Position numbers and translations under genes: made by a program. 64,000 bases of DNA from Klebsormidium nitens. Its lineage: Eukaryota > Plantae > Klebsormidiophyceae. The stretch spans positions 15,351 to 79,350 of the forward strand of contig DF237375.1 in the NCBI GenBank assembly GCA_000708835.1, in the 5' to 3' direction. Under the pieces are notes generated by a model. It ran no database searches and was not told the DNA's origin. It saw nothing but the letters and a program-made list of their open reading frames with translations. Below, piece by piece: positions 1-46,608 of the stretch (position 1 is its first letter; the number at the start of each line of letters is the position of its first letter).

Positions 1-41
1 AGTGTTCATCGCGTCGAAGTTTTGCGCTCTCCTCCGTGCAG

Positions 42-35284: not shown

Positions 35285-38200
35285 TCATGTCTCCATCTCA
35301 TCCTTGGACCAAGTGCCTTCGCCGTCGCCCCGAATGTGCACAACTTGCGAGTGCCATCTCTTGAGCGTGTGCCGGTGTGAGATGGTCAGAAGGCTGGTGT
35401 CAAGAGCAGCGAACTGGGCGTAGATACGCGCCTGCAAGCAGAAACTCGAGGCCTGAGCTTTGCGATTTCCAGGAATTGCCACATGATACAATGGGATAAT
35501 TGGGACCTTTCGACTTACATGCAGTCAGATCTCACCACTCCTTGATGTCACTCAGATCCTGCAATGGGGCTGAGAACTTCTCGAAGAAACTCTGAAAGGG
35601 ATGCGCAATTATTTTTGACACGCGGCACACGCCGCGATATCCGAATGCACAACCTTGGGTAAAAGCTTTCGTAAATGGCATCTCCCTTGGCCCGCACCTT
35701 CTTTGTGTATGACAATTCATGATACTGGTAGCCGTTTTCTGGCCCCCGGCTCGCATCTACACCCAAGCAAACCAGATGAATGCTGGCCTTTCCTTTGCGA
35801 TACACCACAAGTGCGTTTCCGCTCGCTGAACACGTAACACAAGAAGAACGCGACATATGCGCCACTCCACGCTACAACCCACCCTCGCCAAGACGTGGGT
35901 CATGAGCGACGTCACATCAACTAGGATGGTCGCTCGCAGTCAAAGTACTAATTTTGACATCAGAAAGAGAAAAGCCAATTGCCCTTGCCGCACGGCTCGT
36001 GAGATTTCGAAGAAAGTGCCAACCCAGAATTTGTGGATTAGTCAAGTGGGCGTAGGCATCGTACTGACGGCATCGACGGAATGTGACGGCAACCTCACCA
36101 TCCCATAAATCCACTCGGTGTTTGTTGCCGTCCAATCGGACATTGAATTTCGAACCCTACGCCCACTTTGGAAAAGTGCGTACCTCCAGAGCTTCGCCGA
36201 TTGCACTGGTGGCTTCGTCCAGGATCGCCAGCCGGGGTCGGTGGAAGAGCACCCGGGCGAGGGACAGCCGCTGCTGCTCGCCCGGGGAAAGAATCGCCGG
36301 CCAGTCCTCGTCGCGCTGTAAAAAGAAAAAGATGACCTATTGAACCACTCTGGACCGGAATCCTGATTAATACCGGGCAGCTGAGAAGGTTGCTCCTTGC
36401 GGCTATCCTTCGTCTAGGGAAAGAATCGCCGGCCAGTCCTTATCGCGCTGCGGTAAAAATGATAGACCGATTTGAGAAAATGATAGACCGATTTGAGAGA
36501 AAGATAGGCCGTGTGAAGAAGAAGAGACCGTTTGAAGCACTCGGGAGGATCTAGGGCCAAACTCTGTTTGCTAATGGGCAGCTGAGAAGGTTACTCCTTG
36601 CGGTTGTCTTTCGTTCGCGGAAGGGATTGCCGGCCAGTCCTCATCGCGCTTTGTAAAAGGAGGATAGACCTTTCGATGCATCTTGCAAAGTTTAGGACAG
36701 AACTTAAGTGATAACGGGCAGCTGAGAAGGTTGCTGAAACTTTAGATTTGCGGCTGTCCTGCATCGCTGAAAAACTGCGTCATAACGTGGTGATCGCACA
36801 CACTGCCTCGCCTCGATACGATCAAGTCCGGCTGGCCTTTGCACTATTGCAAGATCTGAGAGACTGATGCGCTCGAAGCATGCAAGTTCTATTGGCGGGC
36901 GTCAAGAGTGTCAATTCTTATTTGACTTTTCGTTTTAACGGCTCTCGACGTGGACGACCGAGCCCACTGGTTTCTGTCGGGCAGCTTTGAGACCCGGCTT
37001 CTCAGTATCCACCGGAGGCCCTCGCCACTTAGGCAGAGGAAGAAAGACAACGCAGCAAAGGAAACATATCTGACACTCAATGCAAAGCATTACAGTGGTC
37101 GATTACATATCTCCTCCTCCTCTTCCCAATAATAAAGACTGTCCTTATCCACGGAGTTCAACTGAACCCCAGGAAGATAATCGTAGAAGAAGAGCGTACA
37201 GAGAAGACCTTATGAAGCCGAACGACATTAGGTAAAGAAAACTACGGAGTCCGACTTACCGTCCAGTTGCCGTCCACTCGATGCAAAAGGCTGTCCAGTT
37301 CCACGATCGTCAGAGCCTCCCGCATCCTGCTCTCGACGTCCTCCGTGAAGGAAGGCACTTCCCGGGGGTACGAAAGCTGGGCCGCGAGACCCCCCCGGGC
37401 CAGGAGCGGCGTTTGGGGGAGGAACAGGGTGCCACTTCCACCGGAAGGAAGACCTGTCCGTATCAAACCTGCGAAGGGACCAGGATGCACTCCTCAGAAA
37501 CAGACGTCGTTCGTGATAGACGGTATGGAAGGCGGCAGCCGATGCCCACTCAAAAGAACAGACTGGCGGGGGGCTCGATCAGGTTTTCGATCCGGAGCCT
37601 CGAAAGGACTTGCAAAAAGCCGTCGAGAAACGGACTGGGCGACTTCAACCCACTTCTGCAAAGGCCATCTGCTTAGGCTGTCACGATAAGCACAAACTGC
37701 AGCTTATTCTCGCAGGGAAAGGGATCCACTAAGATAAGTGAGTCCGAACCTTTGATACATAAAACATCACAAGATTTACACTAGGTTTGATGTCCAGACC
37801 CAGTAAGATTCGGAAGCAACGCTATCCAGGGACTGCAAGAGATTTTGGCCAATGCTCAGCACGCTTGATGTGATAACTGCGATGGAGAATTTGAAATGAT
37901 AGACCGAATGCCCACACCTTGAAAGACGCAAACTCCAAAACCTTAAGAAGTGGTGTGTACACATGCGGACACCCACCTTCGACCTGCGGCCACAGCCCGG
38001 CAATGGCCCGTACAAGTGTCGTCTTTCCGCAGCCGCTCGGGCCCATCAGCATAACCCGCTCCCTAACCCCAATCCTTAGGTCGAATGCTCGCACCACCAA
38101 AACGCCCCCGGGGGTCTGCACCGTCAGGTTGCTAACCTCCAAAACAGGAGCACTAATGGCGTCGCTAACCCCATCTGCAAGCTCGGCACTTATTCCGTGA

Positions 38201-41200
38201 GTTGATCTGGGCGAATCGAAAGGCGGGCTCCGATCGGAAACAGATATCCTGGCCTTCTCGATCGCTTTGCTGAGCACGTCCAGTGGGGCGTTGGTGAAAA
38301 GCGAGGCGGGATACGTTCTCGACCCAAACCGGGGGTGGAACACGACAGGACACGTGCCTGAGGTGCCGGTCTCGTAACCCAACAAAACTTCAGCCCCATG
38401 GACTTCGCTGTACGCTGCTGTTAGCTGATCAGAGGACTCTAACCCTAAAACTAAACCTGCTTCTGACCCTTGTGCATCTTCGACAGTGACTATTTCGCCG
38501 TTGCTAGAGTGCGGACTGAGGTCGGCTGAGCGCAAGAGACTGCTTTGCAACCTGGCGCTGTTGGAGGGGTGATTTGAGGCAGCGCTCGTTTCAACCAACG
38601 CTGGGTTAGAGGACAAACCAATGCCTAAACTACTGCTGAGGCTGCCGAACGAGCTCTCATCCCCTAGCGAATCGGCCTCCTGAAACTTCCCAGCGCCTCG
38701 CCCATCCCGGCCGTTACTGCGACGGTTCCCCAAATTGACGCCAAGACTATCTCCCAGATCCACAAGAGCCTCAGGCTTCACTCCACATCTCAACGGCTCC
38801 GCCTCCGCAAACCTTGAAGAGACCGCTAATCCGGTTCTTGGATCGACCGCTGCCGCCCAAAACCCTCCCTCGCGGAGCGCCCCGCAAACCGCGCCCTGCC
38901 AACTCAGGAACACGTCGCCTAACCGTGCCATCTCTTGAGACACGCTCAACTCATCCCCTGCCCCTTCCAAAACGTCCGAAGACGGCCCTGAAGCTCCCGT
39001 TCCGTTTCGATCCACACTCTTGCCGCCGCCGCTAATTCTCCCCTCCCAAAGATCGACTTTTGCGCCCTGAAACGTGGGAACCACTAAAAGGGGCTGCGTC
39101 CACAGGCCCGGCGCCCCCTGCTCCAAGAAAACCTCTTGGAGGATCCCCCGCAGCTCGGGCGGCACCGTGTGAACGCTGAACTCGAGGGATCCCCCTCCGA
39201 GAGATTGCGTTAGCGGCCCTAGCAGAAGCCCGTTAGGGAATCCCTCTTGGACGGGCGCGAAGGGGTTAGGGAGGGTTTGCGTCCAGGGGAACGGGTTTGA
39301 GAACTGGGCTAGGGGGCCTTGGTCTTTCAACCCCGGGAGGGAGGGCGTTAGGGCTACAGACTGCGCAAGGAAGTGCGCAAGCGAGTCTCTTTCTTGCGGG
39401 CCCTGTTTTTGAGAGCGGCACTTCTCATCAGGTTGGACTTTTGCTTCGGTCGCCGTGCCCCCCATCCTTTCCAGGGCCTCAAACAACCCCGCAACACGGC
39501 CGGTCACCCCCGCCACGTCAGACAGCACTTTCGCTGCATCAATCAGCTGGGTGAAGCTGTAAATCAGGGTCAGAATCGCAAACGACGCATTGCTAACCAG
39601 CTGTGCTATCGCGCCCTTGTCGACTTCTGCCCCTTTCCCGTAGATCCCGACGAAAATAGGGAGTGCGAGGATGGCGTAGTTGAGAATTGAGCCACTGTAG
39701 TCATAGGCCTTGCTGCCTAGCTCAAGGATTGTGTGGCGGATGACGAGCGAGCGCTGGTTGGTTAGGACGTGGTTAAGGTCCAGGTTAAGGGCGGTCCGCT
39801 CGACGGGGCTGGAGGCGTACAGAGCCACTTGCTCGGCGTTGTTGCGCAACCTGGGGCACAAAGGGGCGGGAACGGCGTCAGAATCGATAACATAAAGCAC
39901 TTTGCAAAGTCAGAAACTGCATCTGATTGCACTTGTGTTGCTCAACATCAAGTTCCATTGATGACGTTGCTGAACACAGTGCTTCTGAACGCGTGCCTGG
40001 ACGGCTTCTTGGCACGTTGGAACAACGTGAGACCAGGGACCGGTGCTTTGACTGGACGGACGACGAGCTTGCTATCCATTATAGCCAGCAACATGAGAAG
40101 TGCCTCGCTTTTCTTACTGAGTTGCGGCCCTTCATCTCTTTCTGTCAGCCAGAAGGTCATCCACGCTGCTCACCTGACGTGTGCAACTCGGAAGTCCCCT
40201 TCCAGCTTCTCTTGCTTTGCCACAAGGGCCGCGATTGGGGAGATCAGGCAGCGCGCCCCCAGAGTACCGACAGAAAAGAACAGGTACACAGCGAGAGGCC
40301 CTGTCCAGCCGACGTACGACCAGACAAGCACCGTGTAGTATGCAATCATGAGCGGAGCAACAACGGTCTTGTGGAGGAGTTGAGCGAGGCCTGTTGAGAA
40401 GAGCTGGATCTCCTGCAGCAGAGAAGAGCGCAGGGTGGTGTCAGGAAAAGAAAGGGTTGTCATGAGGGTAAGACGACGATTGCCAAGAACAGGATGACCT
40501 CCTGAGACATCTTTTTGCGTACAGTGTTGTGAAGAAACAAATAGTTTGGTGTGGCCTTTGCGAAGCTCTTCGTAGGATTGAAACCTGGTCTCAAAGTGCG
40601 GTTTACAGATTGCCAGAGCGCAATGACAAATTTTGCGATTTTGATTCGTCTCACGGCCAGTTTAAGATAGTTACGAGGGCGGCCAACTGAAACCAGTTAC
40701 AGTTTTTGGGACCGCCAATACTCTGCCAGATGCGACCGCCAATACTACGTATGATTCACAAATAGGGTCCCAAATGCAAGCACTAGTGGCCTTAAAAGAT
40801 TCCATCTGGGAGCCCCCTTCTTCCATCAGATAACCACCAAAATGCTCAAACGTCAGACCCTACCTGAGCCACACGCTGATCCGGGTTATCCACCGCTCCC
40901 TCTTTCATGAGGTGAAACACGTTCGAGTCACGGCAGTATCGGCTGTGAGCGGCCAGTGTCAACCGCTTCCGCCACTGCAGCGCTAGCATCTCCGAGACTC
41001 CGAGCTTGACACCAGCGCACAGCGCGGCAGAGCTATACCAGAGCAGGGAGCGCCACATGGCGGAAGCAAAGAGCTACAAGAGGGGCAACCAATGGGGCAC
41101 AGATCAGTGAGTGTTCACGTGGTGGTACTGAAGCGAGCAAGGAAGAATGCTCAGGCAAGCTCATCCAAATAGAGGAACGCTCTTGAAAGCTGTGTGGTGC

Positions 41201-41796
41201 TCTGATGTCTTCTCCCACTTCCAAGTTCGTCAGCTGTCCTAGGGCTGGGGGGGGAGCTTAGGTCATGCTGTAAGCCATTCGCTTATGAGTTAGACGATAC
41301 ATGCCTCGAGGGCTCTTCAATTGGCTGATCAAGAACGGAACCTTAAACTGACTTGAATGCCAAGTCCTCTGAAACACCCATCCTCTTGAACCCTCTTGAG
41401 GTCCAAATGACACCCTCTGAACCCTAACCCTAAAATCTTGCAATCACAAACAATGTGAGCCTCCGCAGCGCTCACCTTCACGTCATTATCCAACAAGGCC
41501 TTGTAGAACAGCCCGGGAAGCACGCCGACCTGCGCAATCACGAGCACCTCCAGGACTGAGAGGGCCGCTAAGAGCAGTGCACCCTGAGCTCCGGCAAGCA
41601 CCATGAGTCGCCCCAGTCGCTGCACAAAGCGCAAGTCAACGCCGTTGTCTTGCCTAGGAGTGGCATTATCTGGAGCTCGCGCATCCTTGCTATCTTCGGA
41701 GGGCTTGGAACCAGCCAAGATCTGGTCAATGGAGATGCATTGCTCTTTGGCCCCATTCTGCAGGTGCGTGTACCCATGAAGCAAAGGTGTCTCCAT
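35285..41796 (-). CDS. ABCD4: ABC subfamily D half-transporter, ABCD4-like, with an internal MMADHC(CblD)-like domain (~1038 aa)
   Basis: Exons 41796-41476, 41073-40864, 40412-40174, 39850-37977, 37453-37260, 36315-36184, 35431-35285, all phase-consistent. TMD motifs [37 protein letters not shown]. Walker [10 protein letters not shown]-loop FLPQ, signature LSPGEQQR, Walker [10 protein letters not shown]-loop ISHR. Confidence 0.9.
36270..36770 (-). repeat. Decayed tandem copies of the acceptor plus start of the ABC signature exon (real start 36315)
   Basis: Copies start at 36447 and 36648, interleaved with three copies of gggcagctgagaaggtt.ctcc. Confidence 0.88.
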
Positions 41797-42487
41797 CTTA
41801 CCAGCCCCGACTACAAAGAAGAAAGGGTGGCCTTTCCTGCCAGCATTTCCAGACCATTGGCAGCTGGATCTGCAGCTTTAAAAAACTGGCCTACTTCAGG
41901 TAACGAACACCGCTTGCAGTATGAAGAGTTGGTGAATCGCTGTCATTTGGAGCTAGGTATTTAGGTACCTCCTATGCATTTGTGAGGACCTCAGCTTCAG
42001 AATGGTTTGTGCTCATACTTTGAACAGTCTTCAGCGTTCAGGCCCAGGGCGGCTTTAGGCATTAGTCCTAATGGCCTGCCATGAGGGCCTGGACCTGGGT
42101 TTAGGGTCAAGGTTGGGTGCTTGGTCAAGCATCATGCTATTATGTAAATAGCATGGTTAAAGAAGCTGCCATGCATGGCTTGAGGGCTGAACCGTTTAAC
42201 CGTAAAGGGTTAACGCAAACGGAGGTTTAGAAGTAAACTAGCAGAACTTGAACTTGAAGCGAGCGCGGTCAGAAGCGAGCGCGATTCTAAAGCTCATAGC
42301 TAGTAGGGGCAAGGTGCTCAACAAAGCATTGCAACAGGCAAAAGGACAATCACAAAGCTGTGCCAGCAGCAAGAAAGGGCGGCCGCTGCGCTGTTCACCC
42401 TTTCGCTGAGCCAAGCATCAGCCCACTGGCGATTTGATATGCCGCTGCCTTAAGTTAACAGCCGCAGCATTGTTCTGATATAGATCG
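41797..42487. promoter_or_regulatory. ~690-bp head-to-head intergenic region (probable bidirectional promoter)
   Basis: Divergent starts at 41796(-) and 42488(+). Contains a telo-box-like gggtttaggg (~42097), a GGCCCA site and a duplicated gaagcgagcgcg; motif function is inferred. Confidence 0.5.
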
Positions 42488-45400
42488 ATGGCGGTGCGAG
42501 CGGCCCAGCGAGTGGGCGCCAGCAACACTGCCAAGTGGTTTGCCGACCGCACACGAATCGCAGCCTCGCCAGTCAAAGCAGGGAATTGCTTGGTTACTGC
42601 TCTAGCTGTTGAAACAGATTGCTCAAGGGGGGTCAGTCTGTTCATCTCAGCACTTAGCAGGAAAACCACTGTCTCCAACTTGAAACAGTGTGCTTCAGTC
42701 GCCGGATTCCCAATCGTCAACCTAAGTCCACCACTCAGGGGCGTCCGCAATAAAAGAAGGAGCTCCGCCATCCCACGAGCTTCGGCCACCGCTCTCACAT
42801 CATCGAATGATGAAGCAACTCACAACAACTTACAGCAGGAGCACTACGACAGAGACTATGCAGCCTACATCCAGGAGGTTCCACCTAAAGTCACGGAGTC
42901 CTTGGAAAAGATTGTAAATGCCGCCAGTTTGAAACCGTCTCACAAGGTGTTAGACTGCGGCTGTGGACCGGGCCGCTTGATCCCCCATATACTGGCGGCT
43001 GGAGTGGAAGATGTAGTAGCGGTTGACCTGTCTATCATGATGATTGCCCTGGTGAAAGAGCAGTTTGACAATGTGCGCTGCTGGCAAGGGGATATAGTGA
43101 ATCTGCCTCCAGCGTTCGGGCCTTTTGATGCAATCTTTGTGAACGAAGTCCTGGAGAGTGTGCATTCGCAGGAGGCGGTGCTGAAAGCAGTGGCCGGATT
43201 GCTCCAACCAGGTATGATATCTACTGTTTTTGGCTTTCCTTGCTCTGCTTACTAGACTGAGAAACCCATGGGGGGTTGGTGCAGTGGTGATGGCAAAGTG
43301 CTTGTGCGGTGCAGGTAGACAATGATAAGTACACCACCTCCTTATCGTGCTTCTATTTCAAGGGAAAGTTTATCTCTTGGACTTAAAGGAATCATCCCCT
43401 AAAACGACGTATGGTCGGACATTCAAACTTCAGACCTTCCTGTCACTGTACCAAGGAGAAGCACCCCATCAGATGACGTCTGGTCGTACATATTGAACTC
43501 ACAGACTATCCTGTCAGTCAAAACATCACGCAACAGAAGACCTGTCTGCCTGCAATGAAAGGAGAGTCGTGCCAGGGGCAGTTGCTGAGGAGCTTGTGGT
43601 GACCTCGTCATCGCCATCTCACATGCAGGGGGAGCAATCATCATCAGTCACTCGCAAGGGCGGCGAGTATCTGAGTTCTACAAGAAAAAGAGTCCTGAGC
43701 TCCACCCCCATAGTCTGCCAGATACAGAGGAGCTGAAGAAGCTGGCGGAAGGCGCCAGTTTAGATGTAGAGGCGTTCACAGATGCTGAGGACTTCTACCT
43801 GGCTGTCCTGAGGGTGAGTATGCGCACAGGCGTCACTGTTGATTTTGCAGGAGCATGTAGCAGTTACTGAATATAATGGGGCAGTGCAGATAGAGACGAT
43901 GAGCGTCTTTTGTTTGCCTGGGCTCAATCTCCCTTGACGCCCTGCTTGAGGGTTGTGAAAAGGTCGGGTGCAGGGTGCTCATAGACCCGATTTCCTTCAG
44001 GCAAAGACGGCGTTTGTGCCTCCCTAGTTTCGAACAAGGACCGGAGAGTCAAAAAGGACAAAAGCTCGTGATTGCTGCAAGCTGGATAGCACATGGCCCT
44101 TGGGCCGACTGTCATTGTCAAACTCCAGTGTCAATCTGGTGTGGATGCTTTGTCCCACCAACTCTTTACTCGCCCTGGCCATCTTGAAAACAGAACATCT
44201 TCTTTGCCCATGTGCCAAGCACGTGCCACTGCACTGGATCAAAGTGCATACCATCTTTTAGAACACCTTGCAGGACTCTCGAGCATCAAGCGAAACGCCT
44301 AGGCGAAGGGAAGAGGCGGCAACGTCTGATTGGGAAGATGGTAAGCACCGAATAGCCTTCGTTTGGAGACACCTATTGGGGAACCGCTCTAGTTCTCGTG
44401 GTCAGGGGGGTTCGGAGAATCAAGACTAACTGTACGTTTGAACCAGATTTTTGAAAGGCCCGAGCAAAGAAGGCGTCGGCAAAAAGAGTATGTCGCATCT
44501 GCAAAGCGAGAACACCATCCTGAGGTGTAATCACGTACTTCTTGGTACGAAGCGGGTGATAGACTGGCATCGAAACAGCAGCAGAGGACCAACTCTCAAC
44601 GCCACTTTGTCGTTGTTTTCAATAAACAACTACCACGTTCTTCGTCCTCCAACGCTGACACGGCTTTCACATGTGCAGATTCTTCTGCTGATGTCGGCTT
44701 GACACGACCGATTTCGATACGTTTGCATCCTTGGTGCGCGGCAGTGTTATGCTTCCCCAAAACCTGACGTTCCTGCGTGTACAGATCCATACTACTTCGC
44801 AAAAGCGCCCCTCTACATGAAGACGCCCGTCGTGTCTGGATTCGGCCGGGGGAGCCGACAGCTTGGATTCCCAACTGGTGAGCTAATGACTCCATTCAAA
44901 GCTCCCGAAGAAACTGTAGAAGCGTTCTTACGACACATGTAGTCGAAGTTCTGGAGTCTTGCGTCTTGATTTTGCAGTTTACAGCGTTGACCAATTGCCC
45001 GTACCTAGCCTACTGAAAGCAGCAAAGTCGGTATACAATTTTTCCTTCCACGCGAATGCACCTCTGGTTCTTTCGTACCTACAAGTAGTGTCGACAAATC
45101 AGTTCGAATTGCGGCTGACGCTTTCAGAAGGAGCCTCGACTCGAAGATTGAGTAGATTCGAAGGGCACGATTGTGTGCGGAACAGGGCCGATTGTCAGTT
45201 CCACAACCTCCTCCCTCGTCCCGATCGAATCATTGTTCCATACCCTTTAGAGCATTAGGTACAGTGTGTTCAGAACACTCTCTCGACTTTTGATAAGTCC
45301 CGTTTGATCAGTGATATCCCTCAGCAAGGTCGTGTGATGCAATCACGTCCATCATATTCCGCTGTCCGTTTTCCTTCCGCCAGCAAACCTGGCGCCGGAG

Positions 45401-46608
45401 CTGCTGGTCAAGGAATTAGACGGGCTGATGAACGGGGTCTACTTCGGCTGGGCGCGGCTAGTGGCAGAAGGGAAGGACGACAAAGTCTACAAAATGGTCA
45501 TGAACGTGGGCAACCGACCGACGTTCGCGGACGGCGCCGGACAGACGATCGTAAGTGACAAAAGGCGGCGGTTGTCTGTATCGTGCGTGGCTCATTTGAG
45601 GCGACCGGTGCAGCGCGTGTAGCTGGCACAGGTCGCCTTCGTGGCTGTCTTGGTGGATAGCAGGCTGTGAGCCTTGGTCCTTTGAAAGGGCTACACTACA
45701 TTGAGAAAAGCTGGCTTCAGATACTGGCTGGCCAACACATGAGATACTGTGTGGCGGATGTGGCGTCAAGCATGAAAGCCCCGCTTTCTGAGTCTCCTTG
45801 CGTAGGATCTGCTGCCACGAGGAGGTTGATTGAGGGACGTCTATTGTTGGTTCTCCGTGTAGACACTCGACAAGGGGGACCTCGTCCGGTCATTTGTGTT
45901 TGAGGTTTCGAGAGTGGACGTATCTCGGCAAAGCACTTGCCCACGCGCCATTCTCTTGATTTTAAGGTAGCACGTTGGCTGAATGCAGAATGCCAATCGA
46001 GGAACCTGTTCATAAGCATCCTCAAAACTTCCTTGACAGCTCAGCGGCTCAGCAGGATACCCACTATTTGTGCGTCGTCATTGCGGAGGCTGCCGTAGTG
46101 CTAACCGTGAAAGTACCCTTGACTCTGGGAGCTCACTCCTTCCATTTCAGGAAGTTCACGTTTTGAACAAGTACGAGGCGGATTTCTACGGAGATGAGTT
46201 GAGGGTCGTGGTTCTAGGCTGCATACGACCGGAGCAGAAGTTTTCGTCCGTCGGTGAGCGACCTCTCTTAGTGTTCGTACTTTTGAAACAAGTGGGCTTG
46301 TGTGAGAACGGCCGCAAGCTTTGGTAATTCCCAGACAGCTTTGCTGCTTTCAGCTTTTCTATTGGTTTGATTCCTTATTGAGAGTCAAGCTGAGCCGACT
46401 GATCCCTCTCAATAACGCCATTTTGACCCCTTCGTTGAATGCTCCTCAAGAGAACAGGCACAAACGACCTTCGTTTGATTTCATAATTGCTTTCTGTGAT
46501 ACAGCGGATCTAGTGAACCGGATAAAGGAGGACGTGGCCATCACGGAAGAGGCTCTCGAAGATGACAGTAAGCGACAATTTAGCCGAGACACGTTTCTAC
46601 TCGGCTAG
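42488..46608 (+). CDS. Plastid-transit-like N-terminus + class I SAM methyltransferase fused to riboflavin kinase (~480 aa)
   Basis: Exons 42488-43211, 43629-43813, 44274-44340, 44785-44877, 45384-45550, 46151-46253, 46505-46608 total 1443 nt with no stops. MTase motifs VLDCGCGPG, VVAVDLS, LLQPGG. RFK motifs VVSGFGRGSRQLGFPTANL, GVYFGW, MNVGNRPTF, EVHVL, DFYG, IRPE. Both domains are secure; the fusion depends on the 67-nt linker exon. Confidence 0.8.

Follow-up and report, generated by a model that had tools for sequence, protein, structure and literature searches.

Vitamin B12 is freed from lysosomes into the cytosol by ABCD4 (CblJ), after which CblC (MMACHC) and CblD (MMADHC) take over (PMC11311337). 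In humans, ABCD4 and CblD are separate gene products. Human ABCD4 (PDB 6JBJ and later entries) is an ATP-binding cassette (ABC) half-transporter with one transmembrane domain (TMD) of the ABC_membrane_2 family, one nucleotide-binding domain (NBD) with intact ATPase motifs and a linker of approximately 46 aa between the two. Here, we describe a gene of the green alga Klebsormidium nitens in which the two proteins are one. The gene lies in a 64,000-nucleotide stretch of contig DF237375.1 (assembly GCA_000708835.1, positions 15,351 to 79,350 of the forward strand; this whole stretch is referred to below as the window, and all coordinates are positions within it). Its product is likewise a half-transporter with one ABC_membrane_2 TMD and one NBD with intact motifs, but the segment between them is approximately 453 aa in length and holds an entire CblD domain. 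From the sequence relationships set out below, we consider it probable that this protein is an ABCD4 orthologue in which the CblD C-terminal domain sits in the cytosolic linker that joins transmembrane helix 6 to the ATPase domain, and that it couples B12 export to a tethered hand-off of the cofactor.

Three other described systems are useful for comparison. The C-terminal domain of human MMADHC (PDB 5CV0, 5A4R and 6X8Z; in complex with MMACHC, 9MRS) has the same fold as the K. nitens insert and contains the same three blocks in the same order. The K. nitens domain differs from human MMADHC in that it is tethered, lacks the region corresponding to residues 1-115, has threonine at the site of Cys-261 and is interrupted by a disordered loop of 125 aa. 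Bacterial transporters of the SbmA/BacA type, such as the mycobacterial B12 importer (PDB 6TQE), belong to the same ABC_membrane_2 fold family, but they are much more distant: their TMD matches are weaker (36 and 60-75 bits), they carry the SbmA_BacA signature (PF05992) and they have no CblD domain. Finally, in the bacterial protein IcmF, a B12-dependent mutase is fused to a MeaB-type G-protein chaperone, and this natural fusion revealed a physical partnership that also holds for unfused homologues. The K. nitens protein resembles IcmF in that a B12 trafficking chaperone is joined to the protein that it serves; it differs in that the proteins are not the same and IcmF concerns the loading of a mutase with its cofactor, not exit from an organelle.

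Gene structure and transcript

The ABCD4-CblD fusion gene is located on the reverse strand (35285-41796) and comprises seven exons with a 1043-aa product (Table 1). The summed exon lengths are 3129 nt, which is exactly 1043 codons. An identical NCBI protein (P0001, 1043 aa), named "ABC transporter D family member 4 [Klebsormidium nitens]", maps to 41796-35288 by tblastn, and its record already carries precomputed Pfam matches to PF10229, PF06472 and PF00005. Exon 4 lies within an open frame of 692 codons that runs uninterrupted from 37822 to 39900 on the reverse strand.

Assembled RNA contigs from the libraries of four different studies were aligned to positions 35900-41850. Three contigs of 3.5-3.6 kb each (X1, X2 and X10, from three studies) cover exons 1-6, and a 2.6-kb contig from the fourth study (X15) covers exons 3-5. 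These contigs contain five GT..AG junctions; the last junction was obtained from a loose end at 36183 that is common to the three longer contigs, which maps to 35401-35430 in exon 7. The contigs bound exon 4 at 37975-39848, which, with a cut ambiguity of +2, becomes 37977-39850 with GT..AG introns. These are exactly the bounds that an earlier note on this DNA, prepared from the sequence alone, had given for a single uninterrupted exon carrying the end of the TMD, an insert and Walker A, and the contigs of all four studies retain the insert.

It is extremely improbable that the fusion is an artefact of annotation or assembly, or that the insert is spliced out to yield two proteins or a plain ABCD4. 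No splice junction inside exon 4 was found in the contigs of the four studies; since infrequent isoforms may be missing from assembled contigs, a minor form without the insert is conceivable. However, the contigs of these independent studies are collinear with the exons, the frame is open over 692 codons here, the exon frame is also open in three relatives despite many in-frame insertions and deletions, and the same architecture occurs in independently annotated genomes from more than ten genera. Of the three relatives that share the single open exon, P0002 comes from the assembly of a public sequencing run, and the other two, P0003 and P0004, come from JGI metagenome contigs. The fusion is encoded by one spliced mRNA in a single reading frame.

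The transporter domains

Pfam analysis of P0001 identified ABC_membrane_2 (PF06472) at residues 74-323 (E-value: 4.5e-51) and ABC_tran (PF00005) at residues 846-988 (E-value: 2.6e-17), giving the layout of a half-transporter, in which a TMD is followed by a single NBD. The ATPase motifs are complete: Walker A GPSGCGKT at residue 860, the Q-loop FLPQ at 897, the signature LSPGEQQR at 960, Walker B AILDE and the H-loop ISHR at 1012. AILDE was found by direct reading of P0001 and the remaining motifs by motif scan. As an ABC half-transporter, the protein should act as a homodimer.

To place the transporter among the D-family members, bit scores were compared against solved structures. The TMD (residues 54-388) matches residues 17-356 of human ABCD4 with 207 bits, versus 55 bits for human ABCD3, 49 for human ABCD1 and 119, over two halves, for the peroxisomal ABCD1 (CTS) of Arabidopsis. 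A search with the TMD region returned first the fused green-algal proteins, then unfused ABCD4 proteins of fishes, cnidarians and early-diverging fungi (33-37% identity) and then the bacterial SbmA/BacA-type transporters. The NBD does not discriminate between the candidates, as it scores 117-119 bits against ABCD4 and 121-131 bits against ABCD3 and ABCD1. These slightly higher NBD scores are what would favour a transporter of the peroxisomal ABCD1-3/CTS type, an acyl-CoA importer in which the CblD-like domain has an unrelated role. We regard this as very unlikely, because the substrate-defining TMD clearly prefers ABCD4, the nearest non-green homologues are all ABCD4 and the attached B12 chaperone domain in itself points to a B12 context. 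The transporter part therefore has an ABCD4-type membrane domain and appears to be the green-lineage orthologue of ABCD4 (CblJ), as had been proposed, with orthology judged from these score differences.

The CblD domain and its linkers

The stretch between the TMD and the NBD comprises residues 389-841; the estimate of approximately 370 aa in the earlier note was too short, the actual length being approximately 450 aa. Its maximum hydropathy is 0.95, with no hydrophobic segment, which places the insert on the cytosolic side together with the NBD. Pfam analysis of the exon 4 frame identified, in order, the end of ABC_membrane_2 (E-value: 4e-8), MMADHC in two stretches (E-value: 4e-6, 27.1 bits, the cutoff being 27) and the start of ABC_tran, including Walker A; this is the domain order that the note had anticipated. 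When the insert 38278-39186 was analyzed by itself, MMADHC scored 28.3 bits against the same cutoff, and a phmmer search of the PDB with this segment matched the solved CblD chains 5a4r, 5cuz, 6x8z and 9mrs in two blocks.

More sensitive comparisons gave a clear result. The three blocks that the note had matched to MMADHC do align in order with standalone MMADHC proteins (residues ~464-519, ~554-608 and 735-795), and a profile of 71 domains matched the solved chains 5a4r, 5cuz, 6x8z and 9mrs with an E-value of 6e-35 over profile residues 13-160 of 170. An AlphaFold2 model built from the 71-sequence alignment has 144 residues with a predicted local distance difference test score (pLDDT) above 90, and its confidence is low only in loops; this alignment replaced a run with just four close relatives, for which the mean pLDDT was 34.6. 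Foldseek comparison of the model with the PDB returned eight matches at E ≤ 1e-3, all of which are CblD structures (target-normalised TM-score 0.70-0.75), while the next match had an E-value of 1.7. These results identify the insert as a genuine C-terminal domain of the CblD (MMADHC) family.

Blocks 1 and 2 begin with beta strands and a helix; a variable loop (approximately residues 520-553), a long helix and a DPRTG turn follow. Block 3 consists of a beta-hairpin carrying GTCPVVFHP and a final strand and helix ending in LFTNAPL. Between blocks 2 and 3, the fold is split by the loop of residues 609-734, which is specific to Klebsormidium-like species; in other fused proteins these two blocks are adjacent. 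The N-terminal region of human MMADHC (residues 1-115, which includes the mitochondrial leader) has no counterpart, as homology begins at residue 464 and the TMD lies upstream. In the human protein, residues 1-115 are needed for the adenosylcobalamin branch. The insert is thus the CblD C-terminal domain and not full-length MMADHC. Linker 1, which precedes it, holds motifs that are kept among the Klebsormidium-like relatives, including NP.PW.Q.LPNP and NGLLLGP; it may serve for docking or extend the CblD domain as a structured segment.

Selection on the insert

Exon 4 is 79%, 60% and 60% identical to its counterparts in P0002, P0003 and P0004, respectively, while identity over the insert alone is 50-75%. 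Among these relatives, the CblD blocks show almost no change, and the linkers vary in sequence and carry in-frame insertions and deletions. The ratios of nonsynonymous to synonymous substitution rates (dN/dS), computed against two of the relatives (L002 and L001), are listed by region in Table 1.

We considered whether the insert could be a decaying, functionless remnant within a plain ABCD4. Such a remnant would fit the splitting of the fold by a low-complexity loop of 125 aa in which dN/dS reaches 0.89, the borderline Pfam MMADHC score and the presence of only a low-complexity linker at this site in the ABCD4 of Trebouxia. However, dN/dS in the fold blocks is 0.08-0.32: block 3 is on a par with the TMD and NBD, and blocks 1-2, with the variable loop included, are less constrained. 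In addition, block 3 is identical in four relatives whose overall identity is approximately 50-75%, the fusion has been kept across both Streptophyta and Chlorophyta and AlphaFold2 is confident on all core elements. We therefore disfavour a remnant and consider it improbable; the CblD fold within the transporter is maintained by purifying selection.

Distribution and origin

Word-indexed protein searches with the exon 4 reading frame or the insert returned only four Klebsormidium-like proteins, because low-complexity words crowd the candidates, and the wider family was recovered only by an exhaustive profile search. In a search of 1.84 billion representative proteins, an insert profile based on four Klebsormidium-like sequences gave 531 matches at E ≤ 1e-3. 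In at least 22 long proteins among the best 150 of these matches, MMADHC follows the TMD and precedes the NBD, and shorter gene calls contain MMADHC followed by the NBD or the TMD followed by MMADHC. All named fused proteins are from green algae (Viridiplantae). In the Streptophyta, they occur in Chara braunii, Spirogloea muscicola (three copies), Mesotaenium, Closterium and Chlorokybus, and in the Chlorophyta, they occur in Micractinium, Chlorella sp. A99, Myrmecia, Tetraselmis, a pedinophyte and Chloropicon. The ABCD4 proteins of animals and fungi recovered in the TMD-region search are unfused. With the Chlorokybus protein as query, no fused cluster was found among the ESM Atlas clusters of at least 50 members, only plain ABC transporter clusters.

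Fusions from other Viridiplantae (Chlorokybus P0016, Chara P0005, Spirogloea P0007, Micractinium P0015 and Chloropicon P0091) have a domain order identical to that of the K. nitens protein. Compact fused members score 45-52 bits against Pfam MMADHC, in contrast to the Klebsormidium lineage with its extra loop within the fold and its longer linkers. In the databases, the other fused proteins are named just "ABC transporter D family member 4" or "hypothetical protein". Two gene models carry additional sequence: P0181 of Closterium sp. Yama58-4 (1150 aa) has an extra PP2C domain (PF00481), and P0006 of Chara braunii (1924 aa) is labelled "reverse transcriptase" in UniRef. Both cases probably reflect the merging of gene models or the insertion of transposons and not true architectures.

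In a maximum likelihood tree of the CblD domain, a branch supported by an ultrafast bootstrap (UFBoot) value of 100 and an SH-aLRT value of 92 separates all fused sequences and one fragment from 41 standalone MMADHC proteins; the streptophyte fused sequences likewise fall on one side of a branch (100/92). Should the root fall within the standalone group, this would indicate a single fusion event prior to the divergence of Chlorophyta from Streptophyta, followed by vertical descent.

Proposed function of the fusion

The preferred reading of the fusion, tethered hand-off, can be set out as follows. The ABCD4 part would release B12 from the endolysosomal or vacuolar lumen, and the homodimer would present two tethered CblD domains at the cytosolic exit. 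As the cofactor leaves the transporter, the thiolate of the CblD hairpin (Cys757) would cap the cobalt of B12 on the processing enzyme CblC, and B12 would then be passed to the B12-dependent methionine synthase without free diffusion. Methylmalonyl-CoA mutase has not been detected in streptophytes (PMC11439496). Because these algae would have no mitochondrial mutase to supply and the fusion lacks the human N-terminal leader region, only the cytosolic branch would be needed, and permanent tethering could be tolerated.

In human CblD, the Cys-261 thiolate ligates the cobalt of CblC-bound B12, and Cys-262 has been proposed to displace Cys-261 at release (PMC12501144). Across 71 aligned homologues, the hairpin residues His762 and Pro763 are invariant and Cys757 is near-invariant, with 66 of the 71 having cysteine at the Cys-262 position. 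The hairpin cysteine and the invariant histidine are common to human MMADHC and the insert; the residue that follows the histidine is proline in all 71 homologues and serine in the human protein. Most fused proteins read G-x-C-P. A vicinal cysteine pair is present in 15 of the 71 homologues and in none of the fused proteins, so the disulfide release step of Cys-262 on Cys-261 cannot operate in the fused protein as it is proposed to do in the human one. Release would then have to proceed by another nucleophile or by a conformational change. A cobalt-thiolate role for Cys757 is plausible but not secured.

The standalone MMADHC of Volvox reticuliferus (P0012, 218 aa) has the animal-type vicinal pair (GCCKV), and the fused green domains have one cysteine, in most cases followed by proline. 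The fused and standalone green CblD paralogues thus differ exactly at the residues of the human cobalt-sulfur chemistry. With its single-cysteine hairpin, the fused clade may use a variant chemistry of cobalt-sulfur release.

Several observations weigh against a tethered hand-off by the fused domain. First, the full-length protein scores 25.5 bits against Pfam MMADHC, just below the cutoff of 27. Second, in a gapless alignment, Cys757 stands at the position of human Cys-262, while the position of the cobalt ligand Cys-261 is occupied by Thr756; the earlier note was correct that one cysteine is kept and correct as to its codon. In the human protein, the substitution C261S abolishes complex formation (PMC12501144). 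Third, two fused proteins have no hairpin cysteine at all, with histidine in Chloropicon and alanine in P0032. Fourth, a survey of algal CblJ and CblD proteins reported few signal peptides (PMC11439496). Fifth, canonical standalone CblD proteins of Volvox (P0012) and Trebouxia (P0014) fall on the standalone side of the tree. This implies that the fused domain is a paralogue and not simply the sole CblD, and a canonical CblD coexisted with it in the green lineage. Sixth, the ABCD4 of Trebouxia sp. C0009 (P0197, 742 aa) has a Q/P/H-rich linker of approximately 180 aa at the CblD site, with no MMADHC match; the standalone MMADHC of this strain (P0014, 179 aa) is located approximately 455 kb from ABCD4 on the same contig, JBJFZA010000008.1 (L005:3001-8280; L003:3001-4000). 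The loss of the fused domain in Trebouxia indicates that it is dispensable in some algae, and it may serve something other than the canonical hand-off.

Several of these observations bear on the main rival explanation, according to which the transporter has recruited the CblD-like domain for a regulatory or structural role, perhaps as a gate or sensor between the membrane and ATPase domains somewhat comparable to the R region of CFTR, so that it modulates ATPase activity, dimerisation or partner docking while a standalone CblD carries out the hand-off. In favour of this, the canonical standalone proteins of Volvox and Trebouxia have the vicinal pair and fall opposite the fused domains in the tree; no fused domain has the pair, and two have no hairpin cysteine. 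The junction of TMD and NBD is, moreover, an established site of conformational coupling in ABC transporters. Against it stands the strong conservation, within the fused clade, of the hairpin cysteine, the invariant His-Pro and the fold as a whole, which fits a retained role facing cobalt or CblC. We consider a purely regulatory or structural module possible but doubtful, and favour tethered hand-off.

A more specific version of tethered hand-off is a mechanical coupling between the fused CblD and the ABC cycle: the domain would capture emerging B12 together with CblC, and the force of ATP-driven closure or opening of the NBDs would break the single-cysteine cobalt-sulfur bond in place of the disulfide chemistry of animals. 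This is a speculative and rather unlikely refinement. If it were true, the protein would be an "export and load" machine in one polypeptide, and human ABCD4 and MMADHC would be predicted to dock directly at the lysosomal surface.

Novelty and significance

No description of an ABCD4-CblD fusion was found in the literature searched, the scope of which did not include subscription-only papers; this agrees with the earlier note, although the domain annotation in the database does show the three domains. A survey of B12 proteins in algae treats CblD (identified by PF10229) and CblJ (identified by PF00005) separately, with no comment on overlap between them (PMC11439496), and a survey of early fungi likewise makes no mention of a fusion (PMC8085122). 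What is new is therefore a conserved and apparently undescribed fusion of two known B12 trafficking families, the parts and their Pfam annotation being already known.

How B12 passes from ABCD4 to CblC and CblD without loss or damage is a still-open question of human B12 biology. The presence of the fusion in both green-algal phyla is classical Rosetta-stone evidence for a direct partnership of ABCD4 and CblD. The note had already suggested a "Rosetta-stone" reading, and this is strengthened by the retention of the fusion in both phyla under purifying selection; the coupling of export to the chaperone is what we infer from it. The fusion also offers a single-polypeptide system for structural and biochemical study of the B12 hand-off. 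Finally, the fusion affects how surveys of B12 metabolism in algae and early plants are read: a "CblD" and a "CblJ" entered there as separate proteins (as in PMC11439496) may in many cases come from a single gene, and the canonical standalone CblD is a distinct paralogue, retained and lost in a pattern of its own.

Feature coordinates and additional observations

Table 1. Features of the ABCD4-CblD fusion gene in the window. Paired dN/dS values are given against L002 first and L001 second.
Feature	Residues	Position	Strand	dN/dS	Basis
Whole coding region	1-1043	35285..41796	-		1043 codons + stop; NCBI protein by tblastn, RNA-contig junctions
Exons 1-7		41796-41476, 41073-40864, 40412-40174, 39850-37977, 37468-37260, 36315-36183, 35430-35288	-		cut ambiguities apply
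Exon 4 (end of TMD, whole insert, Walker A)		37977..39850	-		open reading frame; contiguous in contigs X1, X2, X10 and X15; same single frame in P0002-P0004
ABCD4-type TMD (exons 1-4)	54-388	39457..41637	-	0.06 / 0.11	Pfam ABC_membrane_2 (4.5e-51); human ABCD4 alignment; hydrophobic segments here only
Linker 1	389-463	39232..39456	-	0.22-0.29	conserved among Klebsormidium relatives; no family match
CblD blocks 1-2 (dN/dS includes variable loop)	464-608	38797..39231	-	0.32 / 0.25	profile blocks 70-135 and 160-210 shared with standalone MMADHC; pLDDT >90; Pfam best stretch 560-599
Low-complexity Ser/Leu/Gly-rich loop (~125 aa)	609-734	38419..38796	-	0.44 / 0.89	pLDDT <50; in-frame insertions and deletions among relatives
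CblD block 3	735-795	38236..38418	-	0.08 / 0.12	identical in four relatives; pLDDT >90
Cys757 codon (single hairpin cysteine)	757	38350..38352	-		translates to C; aligns with human Cys-262
Linker 2 (variable)	796-835	38116..38235	-	0.33	alignment
NBD (exons 4-7)	836-1043	35288..38115	-		Pfam ABC_tran (2.6e-17); PDB matches to ABCD NBDs; motifs
Walker A GPSGCGKT		38020-38043	-		motif scan
Stop codon		35287-35285	-		end of exon 7 reading frame

Outside the window, P0031 (822 aa) is encoded on a 3.6-kb JGI metagenome contig; in it, MMADHC (residues 118-216, 64 bits) is N-terminal to a complete MmgE/PrpD 2-methylcitrate dehydratase. This protein is a second kind of CblD fusion, one that ties the B12 chaperone to propionate catabolism.

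Upstream of the ABCD4-CblD gene, the neighbouring gene (42488-46608) encodes methyltransferase and flavokinase domains. The methyltransferase/flavokinase gene also adjoins the ABCD4-CblD gene in two related genomes (L001:401-3538; L002:255-3499).

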